A stretch of DNA of 64,000 nt from Heteronotia binoei (Eukaryota). Both the position numbers and the translations under genes were made by a program. Positions within the stretch are counted from its first letter, which is position 1. Every line of letters begins with the position of its first letter. The stretch is from the NCBI RefSeq assembly GCF_032191835.1, contig NC_083233.1, positions 35,030,001-35,094,000 of the forward strand, given 5' to 3'. The notes below the pieces were generated by a model. That model did no database searches and was not told the DNA's origin. It saw only the letters and a list, made by a program, of their open reading frames with translations. This document shows positions 8,663 to 60,093 of this stretch, piece by piece.

Positions 8663-11600
8663 CTAAAAGTTGACCGTTTCCATCAGGGTGACTTTGCTTT
8701 CAATTACATCTTTGAGCCACTTTTCTTTAAATCTGCACTCTCCTGGCCTACAAAAGACAAAATGGGGAAATTTAAGAGCACAGTAGTACTGTATTACAAA
8801 ACTTAATTCAATTGAAAACAATGGTTGCTATTTCTTAAAATTTCTGTGCTAAATATAATCAGATATAGAAGGTCAGGAAGCAGCCACTTGTATCTTATCA
8901 GTCTGCTCTGCAGTATTTGAAGCTTTCCTACAAGAGGTTTTTCCTCTGGTAGAAGAACTAAAGCTACACTTTTTAAGCTGCAGAAAGGCATCAAAAGCTG
9001 CTGAGCAGCTAACAACCAACAATGTGCAACATTTGTGAGTACCAGCATCTGACAAACGTAAGTTTTCCATGCCCATGTTTTCCTTGCATATATCCCAGCA
9101 ATTATCTGTAACTTGTGTAGGTTTCAGTTTGGGGCAATTTCTCCACAGAATTAAGCAGCATGTGGGTCTCAACACGTACAGACTATTTCAAAGTTTCAAA
9201 GTTTTCCTAAATGTTGTATTTAATTATTGGTTTGAGAAGTTGGGACAATTGCCATATTTTGTTGGCATTGGGTCAAATTCTGGAGGGAGCCATTTAAACT
9301 CAGGAATCCAGTGGCAGTTTAAAAGCTAAGAGTTTATTCTAGCACAAGATTAGTGTGTCAGAGATCACTCAGTCAAATGCATGTAGTAACCAGTGTTCCC
9401 TCTAAGCTGAGTTATCATGAGCTAGCTCATAGATTTTTAGCCTCCAGCTCACACATTTTTGTCTTAGCTTAGGAAAAATGGCCCCAGAGTACAATAATTT
9501 ATGCAATAGCTCACAACTTTAATGCCACTGTCTCACAACTTTAATACCAGTAGCTCACAAAGTAGAATTTTTGCTCACAAGATTCTGCAGCTTAGAGGGA
9601 ACATTGGTAGTAGCCATCTGTAATACCTTAGCATAAATATAGCTGCTATGGATCTGTGATGCATTGGATGAAGTGAGCTCTGACTCACAAATATTTATGG
9701 TGGTTTGAAGTCAATTAACTTGAAAGGAGGTAAAATAGTTACACCCTGTGGCGGAAAAATTCTAAGTTGGCCCTTTATGAAACACTCAGTTTACTATATG
9801 GAACACTCAAAACATTCACTGACTACAAGCCCCAGGATGCTTTGCAGGAAACAGCTCTCTTGAAAGTGGAAGTTAGGACACTATAGGTAGATTAAGGTAA
9901 TTGAGATGGGAGGGCCAGGAATGAGCACCATTGGCATGAAAATTGTTTAGGTTTACCAGAGCTGGGAAATAAGGTTTATCAAGATTTTCTCTCTGGACAT
10001 CATCAGAAGTCCAGATTGGCATCAAAAGGGTATGGAAATTATCCTACACTTAAGTGCTTCTGTTCTCTAGTTGTTGAGTGATATGTCAGAATAATGATTT
10101 TATAAGCAAGATGTTTATATTAAAAAAAGTCTTTGATGGTAAGGGGTTCACACATCCAGATAGTATATAAAGGTTGAATTTTTCACTATTTCTTGCTGCC
10201 ACGTCAGAGAACTGAACTGTTCTCTGGGGTGCCAGCCAATTCTCCTTTAGAGATCTCTGTTAGAAATTCTTTCAAGATAATCTAAAAGCTTTGGGGCACT
10301 TAGAATCTGCAATGCTTAAAGGACTTAGAATTTAGCAGGTATAATGTATAAGTATAGTTTATAAGAATAAGGTATAGCTTATAAATTGTATAAACTGAGA
10401 ACTGGAAATTGTTTTTCCCTCCACTGTATTTTGGGTACATAGAGGAATACAAGCTATCATATGTTTAAGGAATACCGTGAGCTGGGTCTGAGTCTCATGA
10501 ATTTAGCTGCTGAGAACAAAAACGTGAGAATTGGTAAGTCTTGTGATTGGGTAAACTTCAAGAAGTGTCTATAAAATTAAAGGCAATAAAGACATAATTT
10601 CCCCCACACACCCTTCAAAGTCCTTTGAAGGCAGTGGACTTCAAAGGATATAAAGTTGCTTAGGATGCCCTGTAATAGGGTTACCCTCTGTAATTATTTA
10701 AACTCATGAAGCCTAAACAAAATATTCTGCTTTCATTTGTGAACTTAATGGTGAAGACTATATCAGTAAATGAAAGTTGCAAATAAGGATTGCTAAGGTC
10801 TTGACTGATTGCTGTTGTTGTATCTCTTAGCAGCAGCAAGTTCATCTGTAAACATTAAAAGGCAAAGATGGTTATTTCTTTGAAATAAAACACATATGGT
10901 TCCAGCAAATCAAAGAGTTGGATCCAACCAGCTTTTCCACCGGTGAAAAAGATTAGCCCCACAAAAGGCTAGATGGAGATTTTAGAACCTGCATTGACAA
11001 ACAGTATGAAGGACTAGGATGGCAGTAAGGAAAGGAATAGAAGGAAAAGGCTTGGATGGATCCAACAGAAACTGTTTAGAACTTTGGGGGTGGGGGGGAG
11101 GTTTCCACCCATCTCAACTCCCACTGATAAGTATGATTACAAATCCATGGGATTTACTTAGTTGGAATTGTGCACCTGTTGGATCTATTGACATAAGCTG
11201 GCTTTATCAATAGCAAAACATTAAGCAGTTTCCAGTATGGATAGATACATGAGAACAGCATAAGTATAAATTATCTGGTACTTAAGTAATTACAGGAAAA
11301 TATCTACCTGTGTATGAACCTGTTGGTCTCTACTACAAAGAATACTTCAACAGGTAATGTCTGCAACAGGTATAAAAGTAGATGGTTAACACAATGAGGT
11401 CTTAAGGATTTCATTTTACTGAAAGAAGTCCCAGGTATCCAAGGTTTTCCAGTCCTCATGGAAACTGACAATCGATAATCACATTCAAGCAAGTGATGAC
11501 CACATGCTCTCAGATAAGAGGACCTGGTACATAATACGCTCTGATATACAAAGAGGAGTTGTAGAGAATTCAAGCCATATTTGCAATCAGCCCTTACCTC

Positions 11601-14600
11601 CCCTTCTTCAGTTTGTATCAAGTTTATCCCCCCAAATTCAGACCTTTTTGGGTTGCTACTATTACAGATGCAATGGTTAAAAGCCTTGGTTGCTTACAAA
11701 TTTATAGAAGAAAATGGATGTTATCAGATCACTGCAAATAACGGTTTAAGGATCAAAACAGATCTTCACTAAGACACTCTAAGAAGGCTTGTACTGAGTA
11801 TATTCAGAAAATAAGAGGCTGGAAGTATAAGAATTCTTACATCTGGTTTGATTTTGGAAACTTCTATGATGAAATAAACATTTGCAGTTGCTCGGGGGAT
11901 GGGCTTCCTACGGGTTGGGATGCTCCAGCGTACCCGATAATGATATCTAGTACTGTACTGCAGTTCTTCATCTTCTAGATAGTTTGTCCAATGTAGCCAG
12001 CTCTCATGAAGCTCCCATGTCTGCAGAATAATTTCAAGTCATTCTGAAGTTCTTTGTACATGTTCCTTACCTTCACAGTCTAATTCTTATTATACAATAG
12101 CACAGCTCCATTTGTAATACCAAGGGTACAATCCAGAGGAGATCAGGCATGCCGAAGGCTCATTGAAATCAGCAGGCCTTGCAGTGGAACTGTGATGCTT
12201 AGACAGTTCCTTGGGTGTCAGTCCCATTCTTTTCTTTTAGATGAGGTATGGCAGGGGCTACCATTGGGTCAAGGATATTACTCTGTGCATCTGGTGCAAC
12301 AAAGCACACCTAGCTGCAGGCTGGAAAAGGGACAAGGGAGAAGAAGAGGGAAGTCTACATGGAATTTCCACACAGATATTCTTGAGATCATTGACTGTGA
12401 GCTAAGATTTCATTGTCCCTGAAGTGCCAAACCAATGTCCGGGCTGTACCTATTCAGAATGCAAGTGGGAAGCTCATGTGATTTAATGCTTCTCCATTAA
12501 AAAAATGAAATCCTGCATATAGGCATGTTAGTTCTCTATCCATTAGTAAGATATTGTAGTCAGTCAAGTGAATGCTAAGTCTGAAGTGGAACAGCCCGGA
12601 CACCGATTTGCAATCCAAGTGAGAATCAGGACGAAGTCTCACATTTTTGTTTATACACAGTTCAATAAGAAATCAGGCAGCTCTCACTTTTTAGTATTCT
12701 GACCAAAGAGTTGCAGCCAAATGCATCGAGATGATAAATGTTTGGACCCTTAACCTACAGTAATCAAAAATGTTATGACAGGTTAATTTGATATTACAAA
12801 CAACCAAGGCTTTTTTTTTTTTTTGTAGAAAAAGCCCAGTGTCAAGCATGGTGAAATCCCATTGATAATTGATGGTGTAAGGGTCCTGCCTAACCTGGTC
12901 TGTGAAACATCATGGAGGATCCAACTTTCTTAGCTTGTTATTCTTTCCCTTTCCCCTTCTTGCTTTATGGCTATTAATTAGAAGTAGTGAGAACTGAAAC
13001 CAAGTAATCAGCACCTTCCCATACATTCCAGTAAGGGAGTGAGAGACATCTGGAGAAAGCAAGGACACAGTCCTGATAACACTATGGGAATGTAGACATT
13101 TATGATAGTTTATGTGTGAATGCTACCCCCCAACCCCATCCCTTGGAATCCCTTTGAAGTAGGGTTTAAAATTATTGTATCAATGTGTATTTGGCATTAC
13201 TCTCAATAACCTGTTACCAAAGTATCGGTCTATCAATAACCTAGTCTTTGTATCAACTTCGACTCGTCACTGAACCCACATGCTTGACACCCAGCAGGAA
13301 TTCATTTGTATATTAGGCCACACCTGCTGATGCCAAGCCAGATAGAACTGTGTTCCTATGTGTTCCTGCTCATAAAAAGCCCTGCGAACAGCCATCTAAT
13401 GCAGGTTGTGTTGCTGAACACCCAAAGACCACATGTTTCTCAAATAATAAACCATGTATTTATTGCTGATTTTTAACACAATGGGTTATGTTATACTGTT
13501 CTGCAGAGCCTTCCAGTGTAAGAAGCCTTCCTCCAATGCAAGAGACTGAGCCTTCATTCCTTGGAGTAAGGTTCCTTGTGAAGGAAAGGTGCCAGTGGCC
13601 CCATTCACCCACCCTGCTTTCCCCTTCACTGATTCTCTTTTTTAGTCTTGTGTTACAATTACCTTCATTGTTACAAGATAACATCATTTTCGATCAGTTG
13701 TATACTGCTGTTCTACTCAGTTAACAATGACACCTTTGATTAGACTAAGGAGCCAAACATTTATCAACTGGAAGCTACCAGCCTCCAGATGGGGCTAGAG
13801 ATCACCTGGAATTACAATTGATCTCCAATTGGACTTTTATTGTTTGCTGATCTATGACCATTATAAATAAATTCAATTCAATTGATCTCCAGACTACAGA
13901 GGTTGGTTCCCTTGAGAAAAACAGTTGCTCTGGAGGATGGACCCTATGGCATTTATATCCTGCTGAAGTCCCTCCCCTTCCTAGGATCCACCCCCAAATC
14001 TCCAGGAATTTCCCAACCAGGAGATAACTCTAGGTCAATAAATTAGGGCTACCAGCCCCCAGGTGTGACCTGAGGATCCCTTGGAATTACAGCTCATCTC
14101 CAGACTACGGAAGATACTTCTCTTAGGGAAAATGGCAGCTTTGGAGGGTGGACTCTGCAGCACTGTATCCCACTGAGGACCCTGGCCTACCCCGCCTGCA
14201 TCTGCAAATCTCCAGGAGTTTCCCAACCTGGATCTCGCAACTGTATCCCCTCCCCATCCCCTGCCGGTAGCTGAGGGGGACCTGGCAACCCTGGCCAAGG
14301 TTATGTTTCTGGGTTTTGTTTCTTGACTAAAATAAAAGTATTTAATCTTACTGTCATCAGCATAAAGCATCAGTAAATAAGTAACTTTTACGTAAGTAGA
14401 AATGTACCTTAATAAAGCCAATATAAATTCTTTGATAGCATTTCAGAAGTTAAATTTGTCTTTTGGAACTACTTGTAGGTACCTCGACTAGCTACAGGCC
14501 TGCATCTAGCCAACTTCCAACCCTCGATTCACACATCCGGCAAGGCTGGGTCTGAAGGTAATGAAGTTCATAAATACCAGCCTTTCTCCTTACTTTCAAG

Positions 14601-14898
14601 TATGCCTCAATCTGCAGCAGCCCTTTTGCTGTTGTGAAGTCCTTGCACATCAGCCACTTGATGTTTCTCACCTCGTATTTGGCTCCTGCAACTGAAGAAG
14701 GCACAGCTTAGTGCCCAGCACAGATGGATTTCCCACCCTTTTGGAAATTTCAAAGATAGAACCAGTAATACCTGCCTCCTTTGGTTGTTCTTCTGGTCCT
14801 GCAATAACCTCCACAGCGCTTCTGATTGCATCGTCAACAACTATGTATGCAAGCTCGGGGAGAGAGTCAAAGGGAATTTCTGTGTTTTTCCAGGCCAT
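8663..14898 (-). CDS. AKAP14: A-kinase anchor protein 14 (AKAP28), 178 aa. Exons 14898-14772, 14685-14594, 12020-11841, 11360-11308, 8747-8663
   Basis: 537-nt spliced ORF with GT-AG introns: MAWKNTEIPFDSLPELAYIVVDDAIRSAVEVIAG (RII-binding amphipathic helix)...NIKWLMCKDFTTAKGLLQIEAYLK/TWELHESWLH...YRVRWSIPTRRKPIPRATANVYFIIEVSKIKPD/TLPVEVFFVVETNRFIHR/PGECRFKEKWLKDVIESK...F*. An in-frame TGA lies just before the ATG. AATAAA on the minus strand at 8613-8618. Position is syntenic. Confidence 0.94.
9391..9606. mobile_element. hAT-type MITE, family A
   Basis: Same TIRs; TSD gtagtaac/gtagtagc. Confidence 0.85.
9747..10608 (+). mobile_element. Solo LTR (862 bp)
   Basis: TG...CA ends with short inverted termini (TGTGGCGGAAA / TTTCCCCCACA); perfect 5-bp TSD caccc; TATATAAA at 10164; AATAAA at 10585. 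Confidence 0.8.
12805..13384. mobile_element. Family B MITE interrupted by a solo LTR
   Basis: Left half ends aaagcccag; right half resumes cccagcaggaa...aaaaagccctg. Confidence 0.75.
12840..13289 (+). mobile_element. Solo LTR (450 bp)
   Basis: 11-bp inverted termini TGTCAAGCATG/CATGCTTGACA; perfect 5-bp TSD cccag. Strand is tentative. Confidence 0.8.
13760..14295. mobile_element. Two tandem TAGGGTTGCCA-family MITE copies
   Basis: Shared internal sequence (gatctccagactacag...ggactctatggcatt...caaatctccagg); boundaries approximate. Confidence 0.6.
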
Positions 14899-20686: not shown

Positions 20687-21237
20687 TTTAACACTATTTG
20701 GCTTGGGGGGGGGGGTTGAGAGGTGTGTGTGTGTGTGTGTTTGGCTTGTTTTTGTCAGTTATTTTGATGGTTTTGGTTCTGACTGATCTTCAACTTTGAG
20801 ATAAATAGGAATATTTAGTTATTCTCTGGACGCTTTAACAGATTTTGCATGCATAAACAATGCAATCATGTGAACCAGAATTAAATCAATATGGGAAAGT
20901 AAAGAGCTACCTCCATGTAGGGGAAAATGTGCAAACTGCACATCATTATTTCACCAAATACAGACTCCAGAAAGCAACGCCCCTCATGGGTACATGCCAT
21001 GAAGCAAATGCATTCAATGATCATGCTTTTCCAGACACAGAAGTCCTTTTCAGTGGAGGTAAATTAGTATCCTTTCAAAGGGGCAACGCACTGTGTAATC
21101 TTTGACTGTGCAAATTCCTAAATCCATCTCCTTATTTTTCCCTGAGAGGAAACCTAGTTCCCAGTAAAAAGAAGCGACATGTGAACAAGAGGTCTTTTGA
21201 ATCCAAAATGGGCAGAAAATGAAATTGTTATGGCTCA

Positions 21238-21248
21238 ATGACTCAGCA
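21238..21248 (+). promoter_or_regulatory. ARE/MARE plus AP-1 motif ATGACTCAGCA upstream of the reeler gene
   Basis: Perfect NFE2/NRF2/BACH-type consensus about 100 nt before the ATG at 21349. Confidence 0.4.
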
Positions 21249-21348
21249 GGGCCCTCCCTTTAATTTTAAAGATTTTTTTCCCAAGTCTCAGATAGTTCGT
21301 TATTGAGATCAAGGAGAGCAGGCATAACAGCTCCTTTTCTCCTTGGCT

Positions 21349-24300
21349 ATGGCTCACTGGAATTTCTCCCTTCTCTTTGGCTCCGCAGTCCTTTGGGCTA
21401 TGCTGATTCCATGCCGTGCCTTCCCAACAGGAGCTCCTGCCTCAGCCTGTGAGAACATGTTACCTGTGCACACTGGGGTCCAGCCCCAACCAACTCGGGC
21501 TCCCTATGAATTTCTGTTGAGCTCACCGTCTTTCCTAAACGGGCAACCAATTAACAGTAAGTACCTCTTTCTAACTTTTGTTGAAATAATTCGCTTCAAA
21601 GCTATAATATTGGGGCGATCAAGTGAGATTACTTTTATCCTCCCTAATCTTTGGTTATGCTAGTAATTGAGGATATTTCCTTAATAGTCACAAAGGGTTG
21701 GGAAATGTTTTTGACCTGGCATTTGATAGCTGCTGGCTACTAGGGAGAGTTGCCAGCTCTGAGTTGTGAAATTGCTGGAGATTTGGGAGGTGGAGCCTGG
21801 GGTGTGCAGAGTTTGGGGAAGGACAGACCTCAGTGGGCTGTAATTGCATAGTGTTCACATTCCAAGTAGCCTTTTCCTCCAGGGGAACTCACCCATTTTA
21901 CCTGGAGACTGGTTGTAATTCCAAGAGATCTCCTGCCACCACCTGGAGACTGGCAACCCTACTATTAGTTTGGAACCTTGAAGGGGAGATGGCTGAAAAG
22001 GATCAGTAAAGTAAAAAAAAATGCAATCTTTAAAAAGAGAACAACCCCATGTAAGACTGAGGCTGGCTAGGACCCTTGGGGGAAAAGACAAAACGCCAGC
22101 ATGGATAGGGTGAAGTAGACCTCCATTGAGAGGGAGTTCCAGAGTTGTGCAGGCTCTGAAAAGAAGACTCGGTCTTCTGCAATGCATGTCCACATAGAGC
22201 AGGTCCTCTAAGATGATATAACCTTTTTTCACTCAGATTCACCCAGTTTCCCTCCTTACTGTGCCTCATGGACTTTTTTGTCCACGCAAAGCCTGTAATC
22301 TTCAAAACAGCCTTTTTTGTGGTCAAAGTGATCTTTTCAGCAGCAGGTAATTATATCTAGCCCTGATTTCAGTGCCAAAGTCTATATAGAAGGAGGTGAA
22401 GTAAGGTAGTCTGAATTTGGCACTGGTGACCAAGCTGTCTTTCCGGAATTGGGTACTACAATTAATCCAGAGGATCATAGTTTCCTATGAAACTATGAAA
22501 GAGCACCCAGACCTGGTTTACACATGCAAGAGAATGAAATGGCAGGACATGAAATGGTGGAACAACATACTAAAAATGTTGGGCAGCTAAAATAGATTTT
22601 GCCATGTTGGCCTACAGGGAATGGGGATGGATTCTAGCTCTGAATGTCCCTTGAAAGAAAGAGAACTAGCGCTGCTAGATGCAAGGTCTTCTCTCGTGGT
22701 TGGCTGCACTGGTTCTACATTTACAGGGAGTCTTTAAACGTCATGGAACATTATAAAATGTGATTATCTGTTATTTGAAATGGCATGATCCATTCCACCA
22801 CCCTGAGTCTCCACTACCTCATTGCTCCTGTTATGTTTGACAAAACCGAGTATTTGTTCCATGTGATTATTGGCTTGCAGCCGATCAGAGTTTCCTGTAG
22901 GTGGTAGGGTCTCTGACCATGTATTGCAGCTTTCCCATTTTCCCTTTTCCTGCTGCAGCCTGAAATGCCCCCTTTAAATGCTGGCAACCCCCACTCCCTT
23001 GTCCATGCAGATGTGTGTGACAGGATCCAACCCCCTGTTCTCTCTCCAGTTCAGATCCTTGGCCCTGCCTACAAAGGACTGTTATTAGAGGCTCGCTCCT
23101 TTGGCTCCAACGCTGCCCTGGGCATTTGGAAAACTCCACCTAACAACACAAAATTCTTGCAGGTAAGAGACACAAATCCATTCCTCTTTTCTAGCCCAGA
23201 AGTCCTGGAAGTTGAGCAGAAAGCCTAAAGATTGAACTGTACAATTCTTAAATAATGGATTCAGTTTGGTATTAAGTGGTTCTACCACCCACACTTTCCT
23301 TAAAAATTATAATTCTATAATCTGGCTCTTACATGACACCCCCCCCCAGTATCTTCCCAACTTCTGACTAGGTCACACCTGCTTCGTTTCAGTAAATTGG
23401 CTGTATCTAATGTTTTTTAGAGTATTTGCTGGTCCCAAGGAGGGAAATTTCTTACCAGTACTGTCTTCTTTTAGCAGGCTTGAAGCAGAGGAGGAGGGAG
23501 AGTGTACTATTTCAACCATTTGCTTACTGGTGGTCTGCATTGGCTTATTCCAAATTACATACACTCAGGGCTTTTTTGGTAGAAAAACCCAGCGAGAACT
23601 CATTTGCATATTAGGCCATACCCTCTGACATCACCATTGTTTTGCATAAGGTTTTTTTGCAAAAAAAGCCTAGCAGGAACTCATGTGCATATTAGGCCAT
23701 ACCCCCTGACACCAAGCCAGCCAGAACTGCGTTCCTGTACATTCCTGCTCAAAAAAAGCCCTGCATGCGCCTTGCTGGGTTCCCTAATGCTGTGCAAATG
23801 CGACTGGACCCCCACAGCCATGGTCTAGCAAATTGGCTGATGATGGTAATGTGTTTAGACCAAAGGGCTGTACTAAAACTATTTTGCAAACCATTTGTAA
23901 TTTTATTTAGTGGAAAATGTAATGCTATTATATTGCCATGATATTTGAAGGGACCAACTGGCAGAAGAGACCAAGAGCCCTGTAACTACTGTTCCCAAAT
24001 CTTTGCAGAAACCATATAAATATTACTGGAGGCTGGGACCGTGGGTCTGGGATCATAAGAGCTGCTTAGAGATACAACCAAACAGCTTGAGTATGCTCAG
24101 TGGGATTTTTGATTAGCAGCCTCCCAGTTCCTGTTGTACAACATGTATTTGGAAGCCCTTCCCAGGGGCAAAGCACTTGGCCATGGAACATGATGGGAGG
24201 CTGTTCAGTATGCACAAATTCTTGGGCACATAGAACAGGCTGTTCTACGGATACTGACAGGGTCACTGAGAGCAGGAGAATGGGTAGACAAGATTGTGGG

Positions 24301-27077
24301 GAGCTTAATCACTCAGGGGGCCTGTGCAGCATAGGAAGTCATGTTTTGCTTGGGTCCAAGTGGTGGAGGAGATAAATCTTTAACTGGGGAGGACCCCGAG
24401 GTTCTCAGCAGCCTCTGGTTGCCAACCAATGCTATTATAAACTCATTACTATACTTCAATGATGTGCCAGTCTTTTGAGGAACAGTCACAAGCTGACCTT
24501 TCTTTTAAACAACAAGAACTAGAAGTTGATGCTTCAGCTTTAAGAAAGCCGGAAGATCCATGGACAAAATGTGTAATGCTAGGGGTCTGCAATCAGACTC
24601 TCCCATGCATAATTTAGGAGCATAAAGCAGCTGTAGGGTGATAGAGGAATGGGGCCTGCAGGGGTTAGGCTGCAGCAACACCAGGGAAAGGGGTTGAACT
24701 AGAGTTGCCAATCTCCAGGTAGTGGATTGAGATCTCCCACTATTACAACTGATCTCCAGGTGAGAGAGCTCAGATCACCTGGAGACAATGGCTGCTTTGG
24801 GAGATGGACTCTATGGCATTATACCCCATTGAAATCCCTCCTCTCCCCAAACCCCACTCTCTTCAGGCTGCATCCCCAAAATCTCCAGATTATTTCCTAA
24901 AACAGCCCTGGCAACTCTAGGTTTAACTCTGCCATTCACCATGTTGTTTCCCCAGTGGAAAATACCTTCTCCGAGTTGCTTTGATTCCCAATAGAGAGAA
25001 AAAGGCAAATAAACATATTGGGCCTGTCTTATTTCTGTCATAACACCAGAGAAGGGGCATTTTCAGTCAAGAATACCCCCTTTCCCCAGCACTGAATCCA
25101 TGTCAATCTCCTCCATGGCTTTTTGTGACATATCTGGGATATCGGGTCACATAATGACACTGTCATGTGCAGAATAGCCTTTAGGATGAGAAAAAGTTGT
25201 ACAGCCACAGTTGTACAGATTATGTAAATAGCTTTCTCCCCTTTTGCAGTGCTCTGGAAATCCACATGGAGCTGTGACTCACTCCAACACTAATTTAAAA
25301 ACAAGGCAGACTACGTATACATGGCTCCCGCCTAACTCTGGCTGCCCCCCAGTGGTTATGTTCATGTAAGTTTCATGAATTCTTTTTAAAAATGATGCCT
25401 TCCTTTAAATGTATTTTAGTTCCATTCCTTGTAGAAACAGAAAGTTCTTTAAATGGGCATAAGGGCTGCCAAGAAACCAACACAAGCTTCTTTCTTACTG
25501 TTCACGGTAATTTTATTCTTCCAGGATGCAAAGGATGTTTTTTTAAAAAAAAAAGTAGAAAAAATTTTCAGAGACTGAATCCTCCCCCATGCACATAAGA
25601 AGTGCCCTGCTGGATCAGACCAGTGGTGCCTCTCATCCAGCATTGTTTGACAAAGAGGCCACAGACAGGACATAGAACCCAAGGCCTTCCCTGGTGCTGC
25701 CTCTTAGCACAAATATAAAGAAGAGAATAATAATAAGAAACTGGATTTATACCCCACCCTTCACTACCTGAAGGAGTCTCAGAGCAGCTTACAATATCCT
25801 TTCCCTTCCCCTCCCCTTTCCCCACAACAGACACCCTTTGAAATAGGTGGAGCTGAGAGAGCTCTGACAGAAACTGCTGTTGAGAGGAAAAGCTCTGTGA
25901 GAACTTGCGACTGACTCAAGGTCTACTGCCTCTGAATGCAGAGGTTCCCTTTAGTCATCATGGCTGGAATGTTGATGGATCTCTGCTGCATGAATCTCTC
26001 TCATCCCTTTTTAAAGCTGCCTATGCTTGTGATCACCATTATGCAGTGCATTTCACAATTACTTGTCAAGTGACAGAGTACTTCCTTTTTTCTATCCTGA
26101 ATATATTGTCCCATCAACTTAATTGGGTGTACCTGAGTTCTTAAGTAAAAGGGAGTTTTCTCCATCCATTTTTCTGCACCCCATGTATAATTATGTAAAT
26201 TTCTATCATGGCAGATTGCAAAGGTCTATTTTTAAATGTATATTAGAAATCTTGTCTCTCTGCCTCCCCCCCCCCTTTATTTTTTAAATCAGAGCAACGG
26301 TTGCCCAATCTCGTGAAATCTACTGGACCAATGTCAAGTCTAAAGTGATCTGGAAAAGTGAGTAATTCTCTAAAGTGCTATTTTGAAATAAGGCCCTGCT
26401 TTCAAGGTAACTAACGGCTTCCACTAAAATAGCATATTATGCATGGAAAGAATACATTGTATTTGGGAGAGCAAGACAGCACTGCATTTATCATTACAGA
26501 TCTGATCCCTCTACTTGGAATCAAAAGAATGGTTTCCTGTTTATCTAGCAACTAACTCTTGGCATTTCTGATACAGTGCATGGCTTTCCAATGGTACAAA
26601 AAGTATGCACAAAGTAAATAAATTAACAAAATGTCATTCCTGAGCTGTTTGGAGAAAGAACAGGATAAAAATGAGATAAAGTCCAAGAAAATTGTTACAG
26701 CTCATTAAATTGTTACAGATCACTAATTTGGCCCTCCGAGTACAAAGGAGATATATATTTGACAATGGTTAGGAAGGATATCACCTGGCTACATTGTCTC
26801 TGTCCATCTGGTTAGTCTTGGAAATAAGAGTGTAGTGGACTGAATGACCCTTGGTCTAATCCAGAAAGACAATTCTTAATGTCCTTGAGTAAAATAAAAA
26901 CTGAACCTCTGGTTTTATATTGTTTCAACTTTAGCCCAGAGTAGAAAAATCTTAATCTAATTTTCTTTCTATACTACAGATCCCAAAGCTACTTGTGGAG
27001 CCCAGATGCTAACCAGAACATGGCCTGCTGCAGCACTGTTATCATCTATGCTACTCATTTTGCTTGTATACCTTTAG
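21349..27077 (+). CDS. Single reeler-domain protein (putative defense protein / FRRS1 N-terminal-like), 199 aa, with signal peptide and GPI-type tail. Exons 21349-21556, 23050-23162, 25250-25365, 26293-26357, 26980-27077
   Basis: 600-nt spliced ORF with four GT-AG introns in compatible phases: MAHWNFSLLFGSAVLWAMLIPCRA|FPTGAPASACENMLPVHTGVQPQPTRAPYEFLL...KGLLLEARSFGSNAALGIW...CSGNPHGAVTHSNTNLK...YTWLPP...ATVAQSREIYW...NPKATCGAQMLTRTWPAAALLSSMLLILLVYL*. The motifs FPxGAPxxAC, GxLLEAR, C...AVTHSN and ATVxxxxxxYW are reeler hallmarks. AATAAA at 27359. Confidence 0.9.
21745..21961. mobile_element. TAGGGTTGCCA-family MITE
   Basis: TIRs; TSD ctactagg/ctattagt. Confidence 0.75.
23566..23763. mobile_element. 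hAT-type MITE, family B, in reeler gene intron 2
   Basis: TIRs and family-typical internal repeats; TSD degraded. Confidence 0.8.
24700..24919. mobile_element. TAGGGTTGCCA-family MITE
   Basis: TIRs; TSD ggttgaac/ggtttaac. Confidence 0.8.
25723..25925 (-). mobile_element. Squam3-like SINE 3' part
   Basis: Reverse complement of the 37653 SINE body and tail. Confidence 0.65.
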
Positions 27078-28979
27078 AGACCCTTACAAAAATGACTACT
27101 TGGTAGTTGTGAATGAATGGAAACAGAATAATAATTTTTGTCCAAATATTGAAGAAAATCCTCTTTTCAGCTCTTCCCTAAGAAAAGAATGGTGTTCCAA
27201 CAAGCCTCTTCAAATAGAATTTATGTTTCTTATAATATAGGGCAACTAGCCCCTAGAATTCTAGCCCCTAGAATGGGAGAAGTGAAAATAGGACATTTCG
27301 TATTTAATGAAAATATGATTCCATTGCTAGGATAAACACTATAGATTTTCAGTGTACAAATAAACCCTATCACATTGTTTCCACATCATCTGGTTTGGCG
27401 TAGAACTTTTCAGATTTATTGTGGGCAGTGAAACTACTGGATAAATGTCACTTAGTGTAGCTTAATTACCCAGATCTGGCAATGTTATCTCGAGTAAATG
27501 AACCATTAATAATCAGGACTAGGGATGGGCACGAACCAAGCCATAAACCGCGTGGAAGAACATGCCTTCTGCAAACCCTCCCTGAACTCCATGGAAGTTC
27601 ATGAGCTTTGGGGAGGGTTCATACAGATTACTCCAAAGGCATTTAAATGCTTCCAGAGCTTACTTCTAGGTCAGAGCTCACTCCCAACAGGCCAAATTAT
27701 GAACCAGGGGAACTGGTTCATAAAATGAAGGAGTTCATTGGAGGTTCAAGGTTTGTGAAAACTCTGAACCACAAACCTCCGTTTTCCTGGCCTATGCTTA
27801 ATCAGGACTATAATTAAGTCTGCCCTTACAGGAAAGAATATTTGAGCACACCATGAAGTAGGTATGAAATGTTAACACACCTGATGCAAATATTAGCATA
27901 ATATTGCATGAAGAGGAATTCTTCAGAAATTATAACCAGTACGTTGGATTAGGATTTGGAAGAGGAAATGGGGATGCCCAAGCAGAAGACTACCAGTCTC
28001 CTCTTTAGCCAGATGAATAAAAGCATGGCCTCCCCCCTATATAGCTTGGGACCAAAGTATCTGAGGAACTGCTTGCTCTTCTATATATAGCCTGGACACT
28101 GATGTCATCTTTACAGGCTATTGTTTTGCATTCAGAAGTAAGGTGTGCAGACATAAAGACAAGGCCTTCTCAGCAGTGGCACCCCAACTGTTTCCATCCT
28201 GTCAATTCGCATCAGTGTTTACTGCCTATCATAGTATTTCAGGAGGGTAGCCACATCAGTCTGTACAAGCAGAACAAAATTCAAGTCAGTAACACTTTAA
28301 AGGTCAACAAAATCTTTCAGGGTACAAACTTCTGTGAGTCACTTTGTCAGACATACTCTCATCTGTATCTGATGAAGTCAGCTTTGACTCACAAAAGTTT
28401 ATCCCCTGGAAAATATCATTGGCCTTTAATGTGCTACGTGTATTTTGCCTGCCAGAGATGAGCTAAGACTTTTTAAAAAATCCCAGATCATGTGTCTCCC
28501 ACTCTCCCATGTTTAATGGTTCATTAAATTTAATCAATTGGAATGAAATTGATACTAAATTAATTATATGTATTTGCTAATTTGAAATTAATTGGATTTT
28601 GTTCGTACTGATTGACTTATTAATTGGCTGCTGGGAGGGTTTTAGTAATTGATTTAATGGGTTAGTATTTATTCATTCTGTTTAACTGTTGAGAATTTTT
28701 AGACACTAAATTAATGATTGAACTGCTGATTAATTAGATTTAATTTATTAATTTATTACAGTACTAAATTAAGAGGGAGAAATTAGCATTGGGTAGGGTG
28801 TTATATTAATTTAGTGGGTAGACATAAATTGGGAATCCAATCAGACTTAGTGGGAAATAGGAAAAACGAAACTAGTGCAATATTATATTACCAAATTGGA
28901 GTATACCAGGTATTGAACGATTGGTTTAATAGTGTGGTTACTAAGTGCTCCATCTTGATTCGTCTGAAGCTCCTACGAA

Positions 28980-31151: not shown

Positions 31152-34100
31152 TTAGTCAATATTCTCCAAGCCCTGAAAAATATAAAATTAAACAATGTTA
31201 AAGGCTTCTGCCAGATATAACATTGATGCCACCCAAGAGTTAACAAATCCCTTTCCAAGGTACTTTTCTGCTTATTTTTGCTGACAATATAAAGGTGGTG
31301 ATCATGTGCAGTGCAAGCAGTGTTGCACTGCATGATGGGTGATTTTCCTGCCTAGCTGCCCCCTCCCAATGCAGTCTTCTGTTCCCCACACATGCCCCCC
31401 TAGGTTGGTTGGCCGATTCCCAGGGACAGCATGAGGGTTTATATATGAGGCTGCCATGAGAGGAGAGGAATCAGTAAAAATCACCTCCCTTTCTGCGTGG
31501 AAGTATCTGCCTCCAGAACTTCTTAGATGCAGCATCAGGCAGGCAAGCTCTCAGCACTGTTATTTGATCTCCAGCACTCAGCATTGTTATCAGTGATTTT
31601 ATTTTCTGTCTGAAGGCCATATCCTACTCTGGTTTCTCCTTGAGATGTGTGGCTGTTAACAGATGTCAAGGGGCGCAGCCTAGCCCAGAAGTCACTCAGG
31701 GACCAAGGCAGAGGCTAACTGCTGATGAATGTATTTTTATCTGATGTACATCACCCAGAGCCTGGCCGTGGCTAGGATGGGGCAATTAATTAAACTGAAA
31801 TAACAACAACCTTTCAGTACTAGTTTTGCCCTAACCACTTTGTACCAAGACATCTGTTCAGAACTCACCTTTGATTCATAGTAGCGATCAGTTTCGGAAA
31901 CACGCCTGTCCCTCTCCATTAGGTACCACTGATAGGCATTCCGAGCAATCCTCTTCTCCTAAGGGCACAGAAACACATCAGAGAGTATAAAGGAAAGGAA
32001 AAAAAAAGAAAGATGGCATGTAACTGGAAAAAAATATAGATGCAAAGCAAACCTGACATCAGAAAGAGGAATTAAGTACAAGTGATGCTGGTTAAAGTGC
32101 AAAGATTTTTCTGCAACCACACAACATTACAATCTAACATGTGGCACAATTAAATTTGTAGGTAGGGATACAGTTCAGCAGAGATGATTAAAAATGTTTC
32201 TGTCCCATTTCAGACTGCTAGTGTGGGTTTTTGTCACTAAATGTTTCCCCATTTTAACATACAGAAAACTAGCCATGATGTGTAATTGAAAGAGCACTAC
32301 AAATAGTCTGTTGGTCCTGGTCCAAATGTTGTTAATTCTGAAATGGCTTTTACTGTTGTGATTTCACTTACCGGTACATTTTTACCACATATACCTGTTA
32401 TGGAGCTGGATATAGTGTGGATGGGCCTCTATGTCCCTGAATTACCAATTATTTGACTAGTCCAACAACATCCACTTAATCTAGCGCAGTTCAGTAGAGA
32501 CCTAAACACAGATCTATGCCGTTTATTTATTCAATTCCTATTGCACTTTTCCTCAAAGGAGCTCATGATGGTATACATCAGTTGCCTCTCCCTTGGTTTC
32601 AGCATCACAACAACCCTGTGAGGTAATTTAGGTTTAGAAATTGAGTGATTAACTTTTTTGCCGCCTAGTAAATTTCATAAAGGATCTGAACCCAGCCTTA
32701 TTGTCACTTTAATCAATCCTCAATGCAGGCTACTGTCAGTCACTTTATACATGGTATAGAAAGGCTACAAAAATCTTGAGATAAAAAGAAATTTATAACG
32801 TGAGACAAGATGGTGGATGGTTAGTGTCAAGCTACTGGGAGATTAAGGTTACCAAAAACCCCTACTCCATCTTTTTGAAGCTTGCTTGCTTTATCCTAAG
32901 TTCCCAAAAGTACGGTATTTCTTTGCTTTGGAGTCAGTTCATGTTTAGGCCGACAAAGGGTCTAAACCCACAGCAGTGCCACCCCCCAAATACAAGCCAA
33001 CCAAGCACACCCCAATAACAAGGACGCTCAATCTGTTATCGCAGCCATGCAGTTCTTGTGAGATGGAAGTGGAATCACACTGCAAACATGAGCTGTCCAG
33101 CAGCTATGCTTTGACTTCGTTCTCCCTGACAGGAAGCCATGCCAAGGATCATTCCCAATACACTGTCTTTGGGTTTCTTCCGGTATACCTGGATGCCATG
33201 AGAGCAAAGCGAGAGCCCCACGTACACAGGGTGTGACTAGGATGCTTTTATTGTATAGACAATGTTATCTTGGGACTGATCCAATCAGTCATCAAAAACC
33301 AGACTTCACACAAAGACTCTGCCATACAATCTGAGTGGATCATTCGGACTTGTGAACAACACAGAGACTCTCACTTTTGTGTAGTTCTGGGTGTCACTTT
33401 AGATAACAATTCGGCCCTAAAGATAGTATTATTTAGGTGAGCTAAATCCATCAACGCCATTAAACCTTTCCAAACCTTCCCTTTATGGTGTCATATACCA
33501 CATGTACTAGTGTCAGAGACCACCTAACCCTGGTGTCACAGGTCATCTGACCTCCCCAGCCTGAGGGCACATGGTCATCTTTAAAAGGTCTGACCCATGG
33601 CTCCACAGGTGTGCGTCTTACAGTACCCCTACCTTGCTGTATAGGCCACCCCCAAAACCTGATCAGTTTTGGGTCCCCATAGTAAGATACGCGAGTCATG
33701 TCTTGCTCCCCCTTTTTGCCAGTATTGGATGTTTTATCTGAAGACTGACAGGTAAAGGATCACCTTGTTTGTGTTATACCCTTATGTTGCCCCTATACCC
33801 TTTTTCATTTCTATTATTTCCTAGGCACTGTGTGGTTGATGAATGGATTATTATTCTTGTATGACTATATTTTCCTAATAAAATATTCCTTTAGTTTACC
33901 CAAAGAATATTGCTTCTTTATTAATAGAGAAATTCTTGGGAGACTGACTTCTGTATACACAGGTTTTGATCCTGCTTCAGGTGGTCATCTTTGCCCACCA
34001 AACTAATTCCCTAACTTCTTTTGAGGGCAATATGGTTAACAGCCAGATCCCCCCTGGCCACTGGCAGGGTATTGGGGGAATGCACAGTTGCTAGATCCAG

Positions 34101-35134
34101 GTTGGGAAACTCTTGGAGATTTGGGGAGGGAGCCTAAGGAGGACAGGGGCCTCAATGTGGTACAATACCCTAGAGCAGAGGTGGCCAAACTTGCTTAACA
34201 TAAGAACCGCATAGAATAAAGGTCAGATGTTTGAGAGCAGGCAGGAAGGAAGGAATATGGGGAGAGAGTGGTGGAAAGAAAGCAACTTTAAATGCATTCT
34301 CTAAGCTGCCAGGTGGCTTGGCGAAGTGATTTAAAGAGACAAATGCCTTCACCAAGCTGCACGGAGGGGGGGGGTGCTTTGAGAGTCACACAATATGTGC
34401 AAAAGTGCCACATGTGGCTCCCGAGCCACAGTTTGGCCACCCCTGCCCTAGAGTGCACCCTCCAAAGCATCCATTGTCTCAAGAGGAACTCTCCGTAGTC
34501 TTCAGATCAGCTATAATTCTGGGGGGTCCCCAGGTTCCATGAGGAGGCTAGCATCTCTATGGGAGATCCAGGTTCAAATCCTCACTTCATCAAAAATCTC
34601 AGTGGGTAAGCCAGGGCCTATCACACTCTCTCTCAAACCTGTGTGTTGGGAAATACCTGAAAATTTGGGGGTGGAGTCTGGAAAGGGCTGGTTTGGGGAG
34701 GGGAAGGACCTCAGCAGAGTAAGAGGGCACGGAATTTGCCCTTCAGAACAGCCGTTTTCTCCAGGCGAATTGATCTCTGTCGTCTGGAGATCAGCTGTCA
34801 TTCCGGGAGATGTCCAGGCCACACCTGGAAGGTTACTAACTCTACTCAAAACCCGCACAGGATTGTTGAGGCGATAATGTGGGGTAAAGGAGAACAAGGA
34901 GCGCCGCCCTGAGTTCACTGGAGAAGGGAGGGGATAAAAGTGTGCAACAGAGAAAAAGCAAGACCCAGCTAGAGAGTAAAACGGGAGCTCTCTCGCCGCC
35001 AGATCTCACCACGGCCGACTAGCCAGACATACCTTTCCTCCGTTCGTGTATCTCTGGATCCAGTAGGTGCTGATCCCAGGGATAGTCAAGCACACATACA
35101 TGATAGTCAAGGAAGGCAGGATCTCATACCACAT
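31152..35134 (-). CDS. NDUFA1: NADH:ubiquinone oxidoreductase subunit A1 (MWFE), 70 aa. Exons 35134-35033, 31958-31869, 31172-31152
   Basis: [70 protein letters not shown]. Exons are 102+90+21 nt with GT-AG introns. AATAAA on the minus strand at 31105-31110. Confidence 0.97.
33034..34016 (+). mobile_element. Possible LTR-derived segment
   Basis: TGTTA...CTAAC ends and AATAAA at about 33877 in an LTR-like context, but no TSD found. Confidence 0.3.
34176..34445. mobile_element. hAT-Charlie-like MITE (CAGGGGTGGCCAAAC ends) nested in a TAGGGTTGCCA-family element
   Basis: Perfect TSD ccctagag (Charlie-like target); host element continues on both sides, about 34031-34535. Confidence 0.85.
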
Positions 35135-35605
35135 CGCAGCGGCACCTGCGCACTCCTCCAATGCGACCACCTTTTTTCTCTCTGTCCTCAACACACACAG
35201 TAATCACTACGCATGCGCGAAAATATCTCCCCGACCGCCAGGCCTTTCCCAGAATGCGTAGCGCACTACGGTAGTAGTCGGCGGTTTTGCTATGGATCCA
35301 GTAGGTGCTGAGACCAGGGAAGCGAATAAAACAAGTCGGCTAGATCCGTGAGTGGCTAGGGCATGCCGGGAACGAGGAGGTCTCTGGAGCATGCTGGGAG
35401 CTGCAGTCCCTCCCGGGGTATGTCGGGAAGAGGAATCTCCATGACAACAATGAGGCCTGGCGTGGCGGTGCGTCCCTGTGCCGCTGGAGGAGGTGTTGCT
35501 TTGGGGGCGGCTCTTTTTTCGCTACTCCCGCGAGAGGAGGGATGGCCAATGCGTGCCCCAGTCAGAGCTGAGGCGGACGGAGGACGAAGGCCGGTTTGTT
35601 CTGCG
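35135..35605. promoter_or_regulatory. CpG-rich bidirectional promoter shared by NDUFA1 and UPF3B
   Basis: The two ATGs are head-to-head, 471 nt apart. NRF1-like ACGCATGCGCG at 35209-35219; ZNF143/Staf core TTCCCAGAATGC at 35246-35257; high CpG density. Confidence 0.85.
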
Positions 35606-38600
35606 ATGAAGGAGGATAAGGAGAATGCCAGGCCGAAGGAGAAGCGAGGCGGGCCTCTCACCCCGACGGGGCTAGGAGTTGCCATGGCCGGAGCGGACGC
35701 CAAAGGGGGCGGTGAGCCTGATAAGCTCGAGCGGCCTAAAGAAAAGAAAGAGACGCTCAGCAAGGTGCGGTCCTGCCTGCGCTCAGAGGGGCTGCCCCAG
35801 GTGGATGCAGTCGGGCGGTGGAGCTGTTCAGTGGACTCTGCTTATCCGGGCTGCGTTGTAGTTAGACTGTTTCTATGTCTGTAGAAAACTAGCACGTCAA
35901 GATGGACTCATCTCCTCGACGTGCAAGTTTTCTGGCTCTGAGGATTTTTGTTGCTGTTGGCGGGAGAGTAGACAAGCATACGAATTCCTGTGGCGCCTTC
36001 CGTACATTCAGTTGCTAAAACAGGGGTGGCCACACTTGCTTAATATAAAGGCCATACAGAATAAATGTCAGAGGTCTGGGAGCCACAAGACAAGCGTTTC
36101 AGATGCTTGAGAATTCCAAGACAAGGAAGGAAGGAAGGAAAATAGATTGGGAGAGGGGAGGGAAAAGAGGAAAGAAAGCAACTTTAACGTTAAATATAGT
36201 GATTTAAAGAGAGAAATGCCTTCTACAAGCCAGCCGACCAGGCTGTGGGGGCTTCAAGAGACACATGTGGCTCCCGAGCCAGTTTGGCCACTCCTGTGCT
36301 ATAATGTGGAGCTTTTCCTGAACTGTATTGTTTTTAGCTGCCCTGGAATGGTGGGTTTTCATATTTGACTAGTTGCATGTAGAAAGATAGCAAGGAGAAT
36401 GCTAGGCCAAGCCTAACAAGGTAGTTTTCCACGTGCAGGAAAACGGTGGACAATATATTAAATTTTTCCCTGCCTTAAGCATCTGATTTTGTTGATCTAG
36501 CTTACAGGCAGCTGCTGGAGCTGTCCCTTGACATTACTCTTTCAGGGTGAGTTAAAATATGTTTCCATTTTTGACGAATTGTGTGTTAGCAACCAGCACA
36601 CCAAGTAGGAAAGGTAGGATGAACCCCTTTCCCTGGCATGGCTGTTTTTCACTAGAACAAATCAGGAGTCAAGTTGTACCTTTAAGACCAACAAAGTTTT
36701 ATTCAGAATGTAAGCGTTTGTGTGCTAGAAGCACACTTCATCAGACCTTCTAGCACACAAAAGCTTACATTCTAAATAAAATTTCATTGGTCTTAAAGGT
36801 GCACCTTGACTCCTGATTTGTTCTACTTCAGACCAACATGGCTGCCCACTTGGATCTGTTTTCCAGTAGAACTGTGTGTACTACATTGAGGACATATAAA
36901 CTCCCTATTGGCATCGTTAGTAAGCTTGAAGTTGTGTGATCAAAGTCAAATTTTGATTGATTTTGTTGACTTTGTATACCGGCCTCAAGTTGTGCCCCTT
37001 TCCTCTGTTAGGCTTTTGGAGAGGTGAGGTCACAAATGAGCTGTCTTTGCCTTTGGTGGTCACTACTGCAAGGTACTAAAGTGGCACACACTGGGCTCTG
37101 TAATAACAAAATACAATCATAGAGCCCTTTTGTGTATATCTGCTTTCTAGTTGTTGTACAAAACCATTTATAAATGATCATTCTCAGTCTATCATCAGTG
37201 TGTTTTAGTTGGGAGAATATGGTCTGAGAAAGTTTTCTACCCACATTTAAGTTCTTAATTTCCACCTGTGGTGTGCTTTTGGTAGCACTATAGATTTCTA
37301 AAAAGTTAGAAGTTGCCACCAAGAACCTGTACCAATTTTAATCCTCTCAGTAATTCCTTCTGATTGTTCCAGAATTCAAATATATTAGATCAATAGCAGC
37401 TCAATGATTTGATTTTTGGTTGTCACACCATCTATTTGAATCAGCTTCCCAGAAGTGTTCAGGAAGATACCCTTCCCCATTAAAGTATGTAAAGCAATAT
37501 TGGTCAACAGTATATTTGGTGGGGATTGATATCCCCCCCAGTTTCTGGGGAAGAGGCATTGTAATAGTGATGCTTGGTATGTATCTTAGCTGATCTTTCT
37601 GTTTTAGTTGTGCTGTTTCTGTTCTTCGGCACACACTTTTGTATGTTGGTTTGAGAGCCAGTTTGGTGTAGTGGTTAAGTGTGCGGACTCTTATCTAAGA
37701 GAACTGGGTTTGATTCCCCACTTTTCCACTTGCAGTTGTCCTTGAAAGGGCAGCTGCTGTGAGAGCCCTCTCAGCCCCACCTGTCTGTTGCAGGGGGAGA
37801 AGATATAGGAGATTGTAAGCCTCTCTGATTCAGAGGGAAGGGTTGGGTATAAATCTGCAGTCTTCTTCTGACAATGGAGTGAAAGGTAGAATACATATAT
37901 TTTAATTAATACATACCTCAAAATTCATACATTTTGATTAGTAAATATTTAGTCCCTTTTTAAAAGAACCCTGCATGGTCATTTTAGTTTATGAGCCCTG
38001 TGGCAGAGAGTGGTAAGCTGCAGTTCTTCAGTCCAAGCTCTGCTTACGACCTGAGTTAAATCCCGGCGGAAGCTGGGTTCAGGTAGCCGGCTCAATGTTG
38101 ACTCAGCCTTCCACCCTTCCAAGGTTGGTAAAATGAGTACCCAGCTTGCTGGGGGTAAAGTGTAGATGACTGGGAAAGGAAATGGCAAGGAAAGGAAAGG
38201 TCCCCTGTGCAAGCACCAGTCGTTTCTGACTCTGGGGTGACATTGCTTTCACCTTTTCATGGCAGACTTTTTACGGAGTGGTTTGCCATTGCCTTCCCCA
38301 GTCATCTATACTTTCCCCCCAGCAAGCTGGGTACTCATTTGACCGACCTTGGAAGGCTGAGTCAACCTCGAACTGGCTACTTGAAAACCCAGCTTCCGCC
38401 GGGGATCGGACTCGTGAGCAGAGCTTAGGACTGCCGTACTGCAGCTTTAACACTCTGCGCCACGGGGCTCACGGGGCAATGGCAAACCTCCCCATTAAAA
38501 AGTCTACCAAGAACACATTGTGATGTGACGTCACCCCATGGGTCGGTAACATCTCGGTGCTTGCGCAGGGACTACCTTTACCTTTTTTAGTTTTAGTTTG

Positions 38601-58438: not shown

Positions 58439-59482
58439 CTACCGCTCTTGGAAGAATGCGATGGCTTGCCTGAACAAGTTCCTTAAAGTGGTCAGTCTGG
58501 CAATAGGCCTGCGGCTGTTCTCTTCCTCTTGAACACCCTCGCAGCCTCTTTTGAACCCGTTGCTCCTACTGCGTCTGGATGACACACAGTTGTTGTTGGT
58601 GTTGAACACTCCTTGGAAGGCTACGTCTTCCTCACAAGCCCCCAAAAGCTCCTTCAGCTCCCTTGGAGCATCTGCTCGGAGATACTGCCATGCTTGGCGG
58701 CCGTTATGATCCCGGAGGCTCGTGTTGGCCCCATAGGCCCCCACCAGCACCTTGATGACCATCTCATGTCCCTGAAGAGCAGCCAAGTGGAGAGGAGTTA
58801 GCCTGCCACTAGCAGTGAATATGTTGACATCAACCGGATAACGCTGCTTCTCAGCAAAAGTGATGACTTCTATCAAGTCCTCATGATGACCATGTTTGGC
58901 CAACCAGTGGAGGACAGTGAAACCGGTCACAAAATCTGTTCTGGAGAGCAGGCTGGGATCCTGGTCCAGCAACCGGAGGATACTCCTTGCATCTCCTTGG
59001 GCCACGGTCAGCATCCACTCATGCTCCAGCGGGTCTAGCACCAATGACAAGTCCTCCAAGTTGGCTTCCACAAGAGGATCATGGCCTTGCTGCCCATCAG
59101 GGACCTCTCCCTTCAGCAAAGCCGCCAGCCACACAGGTTTGGCTTCGCTGCTCTGCAGGAGGATCTCCTTCAGTCCTTTCCTCCTCGTGCTGCTTCCAGC
59201 CGCAGAGAGCCTGGCTGTGTCTGTTCCTGTTGCCCAGTTCTGTGAACGTCTGCTGGCCCTGCTCAGGCTCCTGTTGAAGTTGGACAACTGTGCCCGGCGG
59301 CGCATCAAGCTCTCAGTCCGGACACTGGGGCTGGGGGATTGGCTGCCCACAGCCACCTGCGTTTGAGGTTGGGAGCTGTCCTCTTGCGCACATGTCCTCT
59401 TGCACTCCTGGGATGTCTGCTGTCTATCTAAACTTTTGTCCCTTTGCTGCTCTGACATGCTCTCTCCACCAAGCTCCATCAT
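58439..59482 (-). CDS. SOWAHD: Sosondowah ankyrin repeat domain protein D, about 347 aa from the first ATG, single coding exon
   Basis: MMELGG...LDPLEHEWML...TGFTVLHWLAKHGHHEDL...LTPLHLAALQGHEMVIKVLVGAYGA...RDHNGRQAWQYL...NLFRQAIAFFQER*: ankyrin repeats. Syntenic with RPL39. The ORF-track start at 59593 is a TTG. Confidence 0.92.
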   Translation of the reverse strand: MMELGGESMSEQQRDKSLDRQQTSQECKRTCAQEDSSQPQTQVAVGSQSPSPSVRTESLMRRRAQLSNFNRSLSRASRRSQNWATGTDTARLSAAGSSTRRKGLKEILLQSSEAKPVWLAALLKGEVPDGQQGHDPLVEANLEDLSLVLDPLEHEWMLTVAQGDARSILRLLDQDPSLLSRTDFVTGFTVLHWLAKHGHHEDLIEVITFAEKQRYPVDVNIFTASGRLTPLHLAALQGHEMVIKVLVGAYGANTSLRDHNGRQAWQYLRADAPRELKELLGACEEDVAFQGVFNTNNNCVSSRRSRSNGFKRGCEGVQEEENSRRPIARLTTLRNLFRQAIAFFQER

Positions 59483-60093
59483 TCCTCCAGAGTTTTCTAC
59501 ATTTCTGTTGACGTTAACCAGTTGGGTTTTATTTTTTGTAAACCCACAAGCGCTGCCTTCCGGCTGGTGAGATGGGCGCTCCCGAGCTTTCAACAGCGCA
59601 GCTTCCTGATTCTGCCTGCAAAGGAGAAGAAACAGTTTCGGTACTCAGGAGGAAGAAAACGCTTGTGGTGAAATGGGCTGCATGAAAGGCAGCAATTGCC
59701 TGGTCTGCGAAAGAGCAGACAGGCACAATTGCTTTTGTCAATGGGCTCAGAGCTGGTTGGTATAACCCTGCCTGTAAATTTCTCCGCCTCCCAGCCCTTG
59801 CCTAATACATGCTCCAAATACAGCCCCCCCTCCACATTTCTAAAGCCTGAGTTAAACTTAGTACTTCCCCTTGGGACTTCACATGCACCTGGCATCTCCT
59901 TTAAAGGGGGCCCCTGCGTATGAAAAGCAGCTACATGGCACAGGTAGCTTCTTTGCATGGATAGGAGCTCAGTTCAAACACAAACTGCAGCCTGCACAGA
60001 GTTCCACAGAAGAATGTTTTTGCCTCGTCTTCACCTGGATGACTTTTGAAGTTAGAACAGAAGCATGTTTTTTAAAATATCGAGACAGATAAT

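Follow-up and report, generated by a model that had tools for sequence, protein, structure and literature searches.

A five-exon gene at positions 21349–27077, on the plus strand of a 64,000-nucleotide (nt) stretch of the genome of the gecko Heteronotia binoei (NC_083233.1, forward-strand positions 35,030,001 to 35,094,000; called the window here), encodes a 199-residue protein with one reeler domain. We consider it quite likely that this gene represents, in the gecko, an old gene that jawed vertebrates carry at a single locus, and that its product is a secretory-pathway precursor carrying a reeler domain and a glycosylphosphatidylinositol (GPI) anchor. An earlier note on this DNA had proposed a five-exon, 600-nt open reading frame for 199 residues, a leader ending in PCRA before Phe-Pro, a single reeler domain with its cysteines, and a GPI-like tail with an attachment (omega) site near Cys-Gly-Ala; all of these features were recovered, the last as a layout of the C-terminus.

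Splicing of the five exons gave exactly this reading frame, 199 codons followed by a TAG stop. All four introns are of the GT-AG type, with the donors GTAAGT, GTAAGA, GTAAGT, and GTGAGT, and a polypyrimidine tract lies ahead of every acceptor. The internal exons of 113, 116, and 65 nt had the same lengths in the window gene and in Eublepharis, alligator, and platypus, and Spea shared the exons of 113 and 116 nt. The first and last exons, 208 and 98 nt in the window gene, were 208 and 89 nt in Eublepharis, 205 and 98 nt in alligator, and 211 and 101 nt in platypus. These exons were mapped by an exact-match chain, and the result covers the four of five species solved in this way (Eublepharis, alligator, platypus, and Spea), with the Callorhinchus gene (236 residues, extra 5′ exons) outside it. 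The exon pattern recurs exactly in three other species, which goes far beyond chance, and the comparison indicates a genuine gene with all five exons intact.

Peptides from exons 1, 2, and 3 matched the Pfam Reeler profile (PF02014) collinearly, at profile positions 1–34, 46–79, and 83–116, with scores of 13.9, 15.4, and 21.4 bits (gathering score, 21 bits). The window was scanned as separate exon peptides, with close orthologs as proxies, and these peptide scans returned nothing of note besides Reeler. Orthologs 80–90% identical to the window protein scored 85–90 bits over profile positions 1–131, and close orthologs overall scored 78–95 bits, which together with the exon-peptide matches places the window protein in the Reeler family. 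We judged the fold on the Euleptes ortholog (85% identical), whose AlphaFold model, built with 50 family sequences, had a mean predicted local distance difference test score of 85.6 and contained a β-sandwich at residues ~54–167 and terminal helices at residues 6–18 and 184–197. The eight best matches of this model in the PDB were F-spondin reeler domains (2ZOT, 2ZOU, and 3COO), with template-modeling scores by target of 0.61–0.69 and E-values of 6e-8 to 4e-6. Thus, the model has the reeler β-sandwich fold of F-spondin at a sequence identity of only 17–19%; in F-spondin, this domain forms the N-terminus of a large matrix protein with several domains, unlike in the stand-alone window protein. 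When the family sequence profile was compared with the PDB, no Reeler chain was found, only chance matches at E > 0.1. Cys34 and Cys108 were invariant in the family (50 of 50 sequences). Cys139 and Cys173 occurred together in 25 of these sequences and were jointly missing from the remaining 25, without a discordant case, and this perfect co-occurrence argues for a second disulfide and for the presence of Cys173 in the mature protein.

A word search with the stop-free reading frame around exon 1 as query found turtle proteins with the name 'putative defense protein 3' as well as an incomplete Gekko japonicus protein, and a profile built from the first matches found 188 relatives, of which the best 120, down to an E-value of 4e-48, were listed. 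The relatives are named 'putative defense protein 3', 'Hdd11', 'Reelin domain-containing protein', or 'si:dkey-251i10.2'; PF02014 is the only Pfam domain in each, and nearly all are 160–236 residues long. They come from geckos, lizards, snakes, tuatara, turtles, and alligator among the reptiles, and from many frogs, lungfish, Polypterus, sturgeon, gar, teleosts, sharks, chimaera, and platypus. NCBI models exist in Eublepharis, Gekko, Sphaerodactylus, Podarcis, turtles, alligator, and platypus, and a zebrafish member is already in RefSeq (NP_001313480, si:dkey-251i10.2); the H. binoei copy was not among the proteins of the collection searched. Within the family, E-values reached 1e-125, and the window protein shared 90% identity with the fragment from Gekko japonicus, 85% with the Euleptes protein, 83% with that of Sphaerodactylus, and 80% with that of Eublepharis. 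In a maximum-likelihood tree, it was sister to the Gekko japonicus protein (support 98/96), within Gekkota (99/96) and Squamata (100/99), and the gene tree broadly tracked the species tree. Based upon this placement and the agreement of the two trees, the sequence comparison indicates that the window gene is the gecko one-to-one ortholog of the 'putative defense protein 3 / Hdd11-like' gene, and sequence, locus position, and exon structure all assign it to the same orthogroup. Compared with the other vertebrate genes of this name, it has the same five exons, the same layout of leader, Reeler domain, and hydrophobic tail, and the same neighbors, and nothing of substance differs. Some database entries mislabel family members as 'ferric-chelate reductase 1-like'. 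FRRS1/SDR2 proteins do have an N-terminal Reeler domain like that of the window protein, but they add DOMON and cytochrome b561 domains; we rejected membership in that family because the window protein has Reeler only and ends at residue 199.

The chromosomal position of the gene supports the same assignment. As the earlier note had placed it, the gene lies between AKAP14 and NDUFA1, both located in the window by tblastx, and the order AKAP14 (–), reeler (+), NDUFA1 (–) is common to the window, alligator, platypus, and elephant shark. In alligator, an AKAP28-domain gene (–), the Reeler gene (+), the MWFE/NDUFA1 gene (–), and UPF3B (+) follow one another; platypus has this order plus RNF113A after NDUFA1 (L002:20304-21341), and elephant shark has it with two tandem reeler genes. 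The 10-kb flank available for Eublepharis covers the reeler gene, NDUFA1, and UPF3B only, and by blastn the window is collinear with that locus from ~13980 to 40771. The highest identity among all blocks of this alignment was found in the block at 21027–21627, which includes the start of the reeler gene, and similarity extends beyond the stop codon to ~27422. The order shared by the four species indicates that the reeler gene is the ancestral occupant of the AKAP14–NDUFA1 interval in jawed vertebrates rather than a squamate addition. The suggestion that it is an extra gene kept in squamates therefore failed: we rejected a squamate-specific origin because orthologs range from sharks to platypus, lie at the same locus in platypus, alligator, and elephant shark, and are annotated in many genomes, zebrafish RefSeq included. 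Coordinates of the gene and its neighbors are collected in Table 1.

Table 1. Features of the reeler gene and its neighbors, in window positions
Feature	Positions	Strand	Description and basis
AKAP14	8663..14713	-	Exons ~8663-8755, 11301-11381, 11826-12029, 14570-14713; tblastx with AKAP28-domain genes of alligator, platypus, and elephant shark
Putative promoter and 5′ untranslated region	21027..21348	+	Part of blastn block 21027-21627, 85.6% identity to Eublepharis (L001); promoter role inferred
Reeler gene, exon 1 (208 nt)	21349..21556	+	ATG; signal-like leader, residues 1-24 (21349-21420); mature start FPTGAP; first part of Reeler domain
Reeler gene, exon 2 (113 nt)	23050..23162	+	Middle of Reeler domain, profile 46-79
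Reeler gene, exon 3 (116 nt)	25250..25365	+	Reeler profile 83-116; invariant Cys108 (QCSGNP), THSN, Cys139
Reeler gene, exon 4 (65 nt)	26293..26357	+	Final strands of Reeler domain
Reeler gene, exon 5 (98 nt)	26980..27077	+	Cys173-Gly-Ala 26994-27002; 8-residue spacer; tail 27027-27074; TAG 27075-27077
AATAAA, candidate polyadenylation signal	27359..27364	+	282 nt past stop; read from sequence
NDUFA1	31812..35134	-	Exons ~31812-31976, 35024-35134; tblastx with MWFE genes of alligator and platypus
UPF3B	35605..45170	+	tblastx with alligator UPF3B, exons up to 100% identical; head-to-head with NDUFA1

The second reeler gene of elephant shark encodes 205 residues and lies between the first and NDUFA1 (L004:22523-24904). 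Proteins of skates and rays, which grouped apart on long branches in the tree, may correspond to this second paralog.

Rates of substitution differed strongly along the protein. Between the window gene and its Eublepharis ortholog, the ratio of nonsynonymous to synonymous substitutions (dN/dS) was 0.12 for the Reeler domain, compared with 0.67 for the leader and 1.19 for the tail; the whole coding sequence gave 0.24. The ratio for the Reeler domain was 0.16 in a comparison with alligator. As judged from these ratios, the Reeler domain is clearly under purifying selection. Leader and tail change in sequence yet stay hydrophobic across the family, the pattern expected of targeting peptides that are removed.

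The two ends of the protein were read in more detail. The leader is hydrophobic and ends in LIPCRA, with Cys at position –3 and Ala at position –1, followed by FPTGAP; strong conservation starts exactly at Phe25, and the FPxGAP motif starts 15–27 residues from the N-terminus in 97 of the best 120 relatives. The C-terminus reads KATCGA-QMLTRTWP-AAALLSSMLLILLVYL-stop, in which a polar spacer of 8 residues separates Cys173-Gly-Ala from 16 hydrophobic residues that form the very end of the protein. Nearly all full-length relatives also have a hydrophobic end with 0–4 residues after it and a Gly/Ala/Ser-rich linker before it, as in the teleost linker LATGASAGMAEEKP, which leads into the tail. Candidate GPI signals were scored by requiring small residues from omega to omega+2, a polar spacer of 5–10 residues, and a hydrophobic tail reaching the end, a crude rule of our own that 74 of 102 full-length relatives passed. 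In gecko, alligator, and platypus, exon 5 is kept with the same phase, the CGA motif, and the hydrophobic tail, as it is in ~100 annotated relatives. This classical layout of an attachment signal makes it reasonably probable that the protein is GPI-anchored, with the omega site at Cys173 or a neighbor.

The results above establish the structure of the gene, its domain and fold, its orthology and synteny, and the purifying selection on it; building upon them, the reading that we favor has the following course. The 199-residue precursor would enter the secretory pathway via its leader, with predicted cleavage after Ala24. One reeler β-sandwich would form from residues ~25–167, presumably held by disulfides between the invariant pair Cys34–Cys108 and between Cys139 and Cys173. 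A GPI anchor, attached at Cys173, Gly174, or Ala175, would then replace the C-terminal 24–26 residues and hold the reeler domain at the extracellular side of the plasma membrane. By analogy with arthropod proteins, and speculatively, the domain would probably bind glycans or other polymers there.

Several observations weigh against this reading. Cysteine is an uncommon omega residue, and an omega site at Gly174 or Ala175 would place Gln or Met at omega+2. The tails of turtle proteins are short (12 residues) and contain His, and some annotated models, from skinks and Spea, have no tail and possibly represent a secreted isoform. Moreover, no RNA sequencing run is listed for this genome, so that the splice junctions are predictions from sequence and expression in this species is presumed. 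The last point would also suit a gene that is decaying or silent in H. binoei, an intact-looking pseudogene, but we find this scarcely credible given the intact reading frame, the canonical splice sites throughout, the low dN/dS of the domain in comparisons with both Eublepharis and alligator, the short terminal branch of the window protein in the tree (0.054), and the conserved upstream region.

The other alternatives keep the gene and its domain and differ in the fate of the C-terminus. If the tail were a true membrane span, the product would be a type I protein without a cytoplasmic tail, and both the 16 hydrophobic residues and the helix predicted for this region in the ortholog model would fit. 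We consider this unlikely, however, as no residue follows the hydrophobic stretch, basic flanking residues are missing, and the tails of relatives are as short as 12–15 residues. In addition, the tail drifts freely, as its dN/dS of 1.19 attests, with small residues persisting 6–10 positions upstream; a short, drifting tail behind persistent small residues is what one sees in GPI signals that are cleaved off, not in a functional transmembrane helix. Alternatively, intron 4 could remain unspliced, making a soluble secreted reeler protein the main product and exon 5 minor or unused. Reading through the exon 4 donor GTGAGTAA (26358–26365) reaches an in-frame TAA after two codons and would end the protein in VIWKSE; two skink models (P0011 and P0015) end in VIWRSE, and the Spea model also has no tail. 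A tail-less secreted isoform is possible. As the main product, it is highly unlikely: the preservation of exon 5 in gecko, alligator, platypus, and ~100 relatives speaks for its use, the stop sits inside a near-consensus donor and may be meaningless, and in the models without a tail, a short final exon may just have been overlooked.

Among known proteins, the arthropod single-reeler proteins (Noduler, Hdd11, tick PIXR, crayfish PcReeler, and shrimp LvReeler1-3) are likewise small secretory proteins consisting almost wholly of one Reeler domain. They are described as both secreted and soluble, whereas the vertebrate family has a conserved C-terminal GPI-type signal, an apparent membrane tether that sets it apart from its arthropod namesakes. 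The NCBI names of the vertebrate genes derive from these proteins; the family name reflects automatic similarity to insect proteins and has no experimental basis. Mollusc 'putative defense protein' clusters were among the language-model neighbors of the family. Crayfish PcReeler (PMC10149183) and tick PIXR (PMC5543126) are secreted single-reeler proteins whose binding partners are bacteria and microbial polysaccharides and which limit biofilms, and by this analogy one may hypothesize that the vertebrate protein presents an arthropod-type binding domain on the cell surface. Innate defense or matrix adhesion, the possible roles named in the earlier note, would likewise be hypotheses. For the vertebrate gene, we found no functional study among the papers searched, in agreement with its description as uncharacterized in the earlier note. 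The zebrafish protein has been detected by mass spectrometry in a proteomic study of larvae, whose table gives it under its RefSeq 'precursor' name (PMC7271515), and a goldfish 'putative defense protein 3', matched by name only, is expressed in yellow and brown skin and not in white skin (PMC9854719).

Birds and therians contributed no protein to the best 120 of the 188 relatives, nor to the full set of 47 matches of a second search based upon the platypus and alligator proteins; both absences concern annotated proteins of 0.55–1.75 times the query length and not the genomic DNA of birds or therians. From these results, we infer that the gene was lost in therians and in birds. The therian state would be a loss because platypus carries the gene between AKAP14 and NDUFA1. 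Of the earlier proposal that the gene was lost from, or never present at, the mammalian locus, the second part is thus contradicted by platypus, and the first agrees, for therians, with the annotated proteins. The platypus ortholog (P0041) has a branch of 1.06 changes per site, compared with a median of 0.26, and altered versions of conserved motifs (LLLLAQ for LLLEAR and YSWLYT for YTWLPP). The mammalian stem may thus have seen relaxed or shifted evolution of the gene ahead of its loss in therians.

A contig of the Logan assembly of SRR22936799 (L007) contains a 251-residue open reading frame (P0132) with a degenerate stretch that resembles platypus reeler exons 2–3. It has the motifs LLLLAQAENSS..ALG and FLECSGNP and no Pfam Reeler match, and could be a decayed mammalian relic of the reeler gene.

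By its name, REELD1 would also have an N-terminal Reeler domain. It is described as a separate gene, which birds and mammals keep according to published papers, and in the papers searched it appears only within gene lists.

As an annotation, the window gene is ordinary, a correct call for a family that is already in RefSeq and functionally unstudied. Its biological value is modest and lies in the age of the family, the purifying selection on it, and a microsynteny kept through jawed-vertebrate history. Little functional work has been done on the family because it is seemingly missing from birds and therian mammals; if the surface-defense reading were true, loss in these groups would explain how the gene escaped study in the usual models. 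In its fullest form, this reading makes the protein a GPI-anchored surface counterpart of the biofilm-limiting arthropod reelers, located between AKAP14 and NDUFA1 since before the split of sharks and bony vertebrates, active in microbe- or glycan-binding defense, and lost independently in therians and birds. Taken as a whole, this analogy-based proposal is doubtful. The ligand of a stand-alone vertebrate reeler domain could most practically be sought in zebrafish (si:dkey-251i10.2) or in Xenopus.

A Pfam scan of the largest open reading frames of the window was uninformative about the neighbors, and genes of the orthologous loci were used as tblastx queries instead. NDUFA1 (–) and UPF3B (+) lie head-to-head across a gap of ~470 bp (35134–35605), without RNF113A between them, and platypus RNF113A as a tblastx query had no match in the window. 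Farther along, on the minus strand at 58442–59593, a single open reading frame encodes 384 residues with ankyrin repeats (Pfam Ank_2 and Ank).

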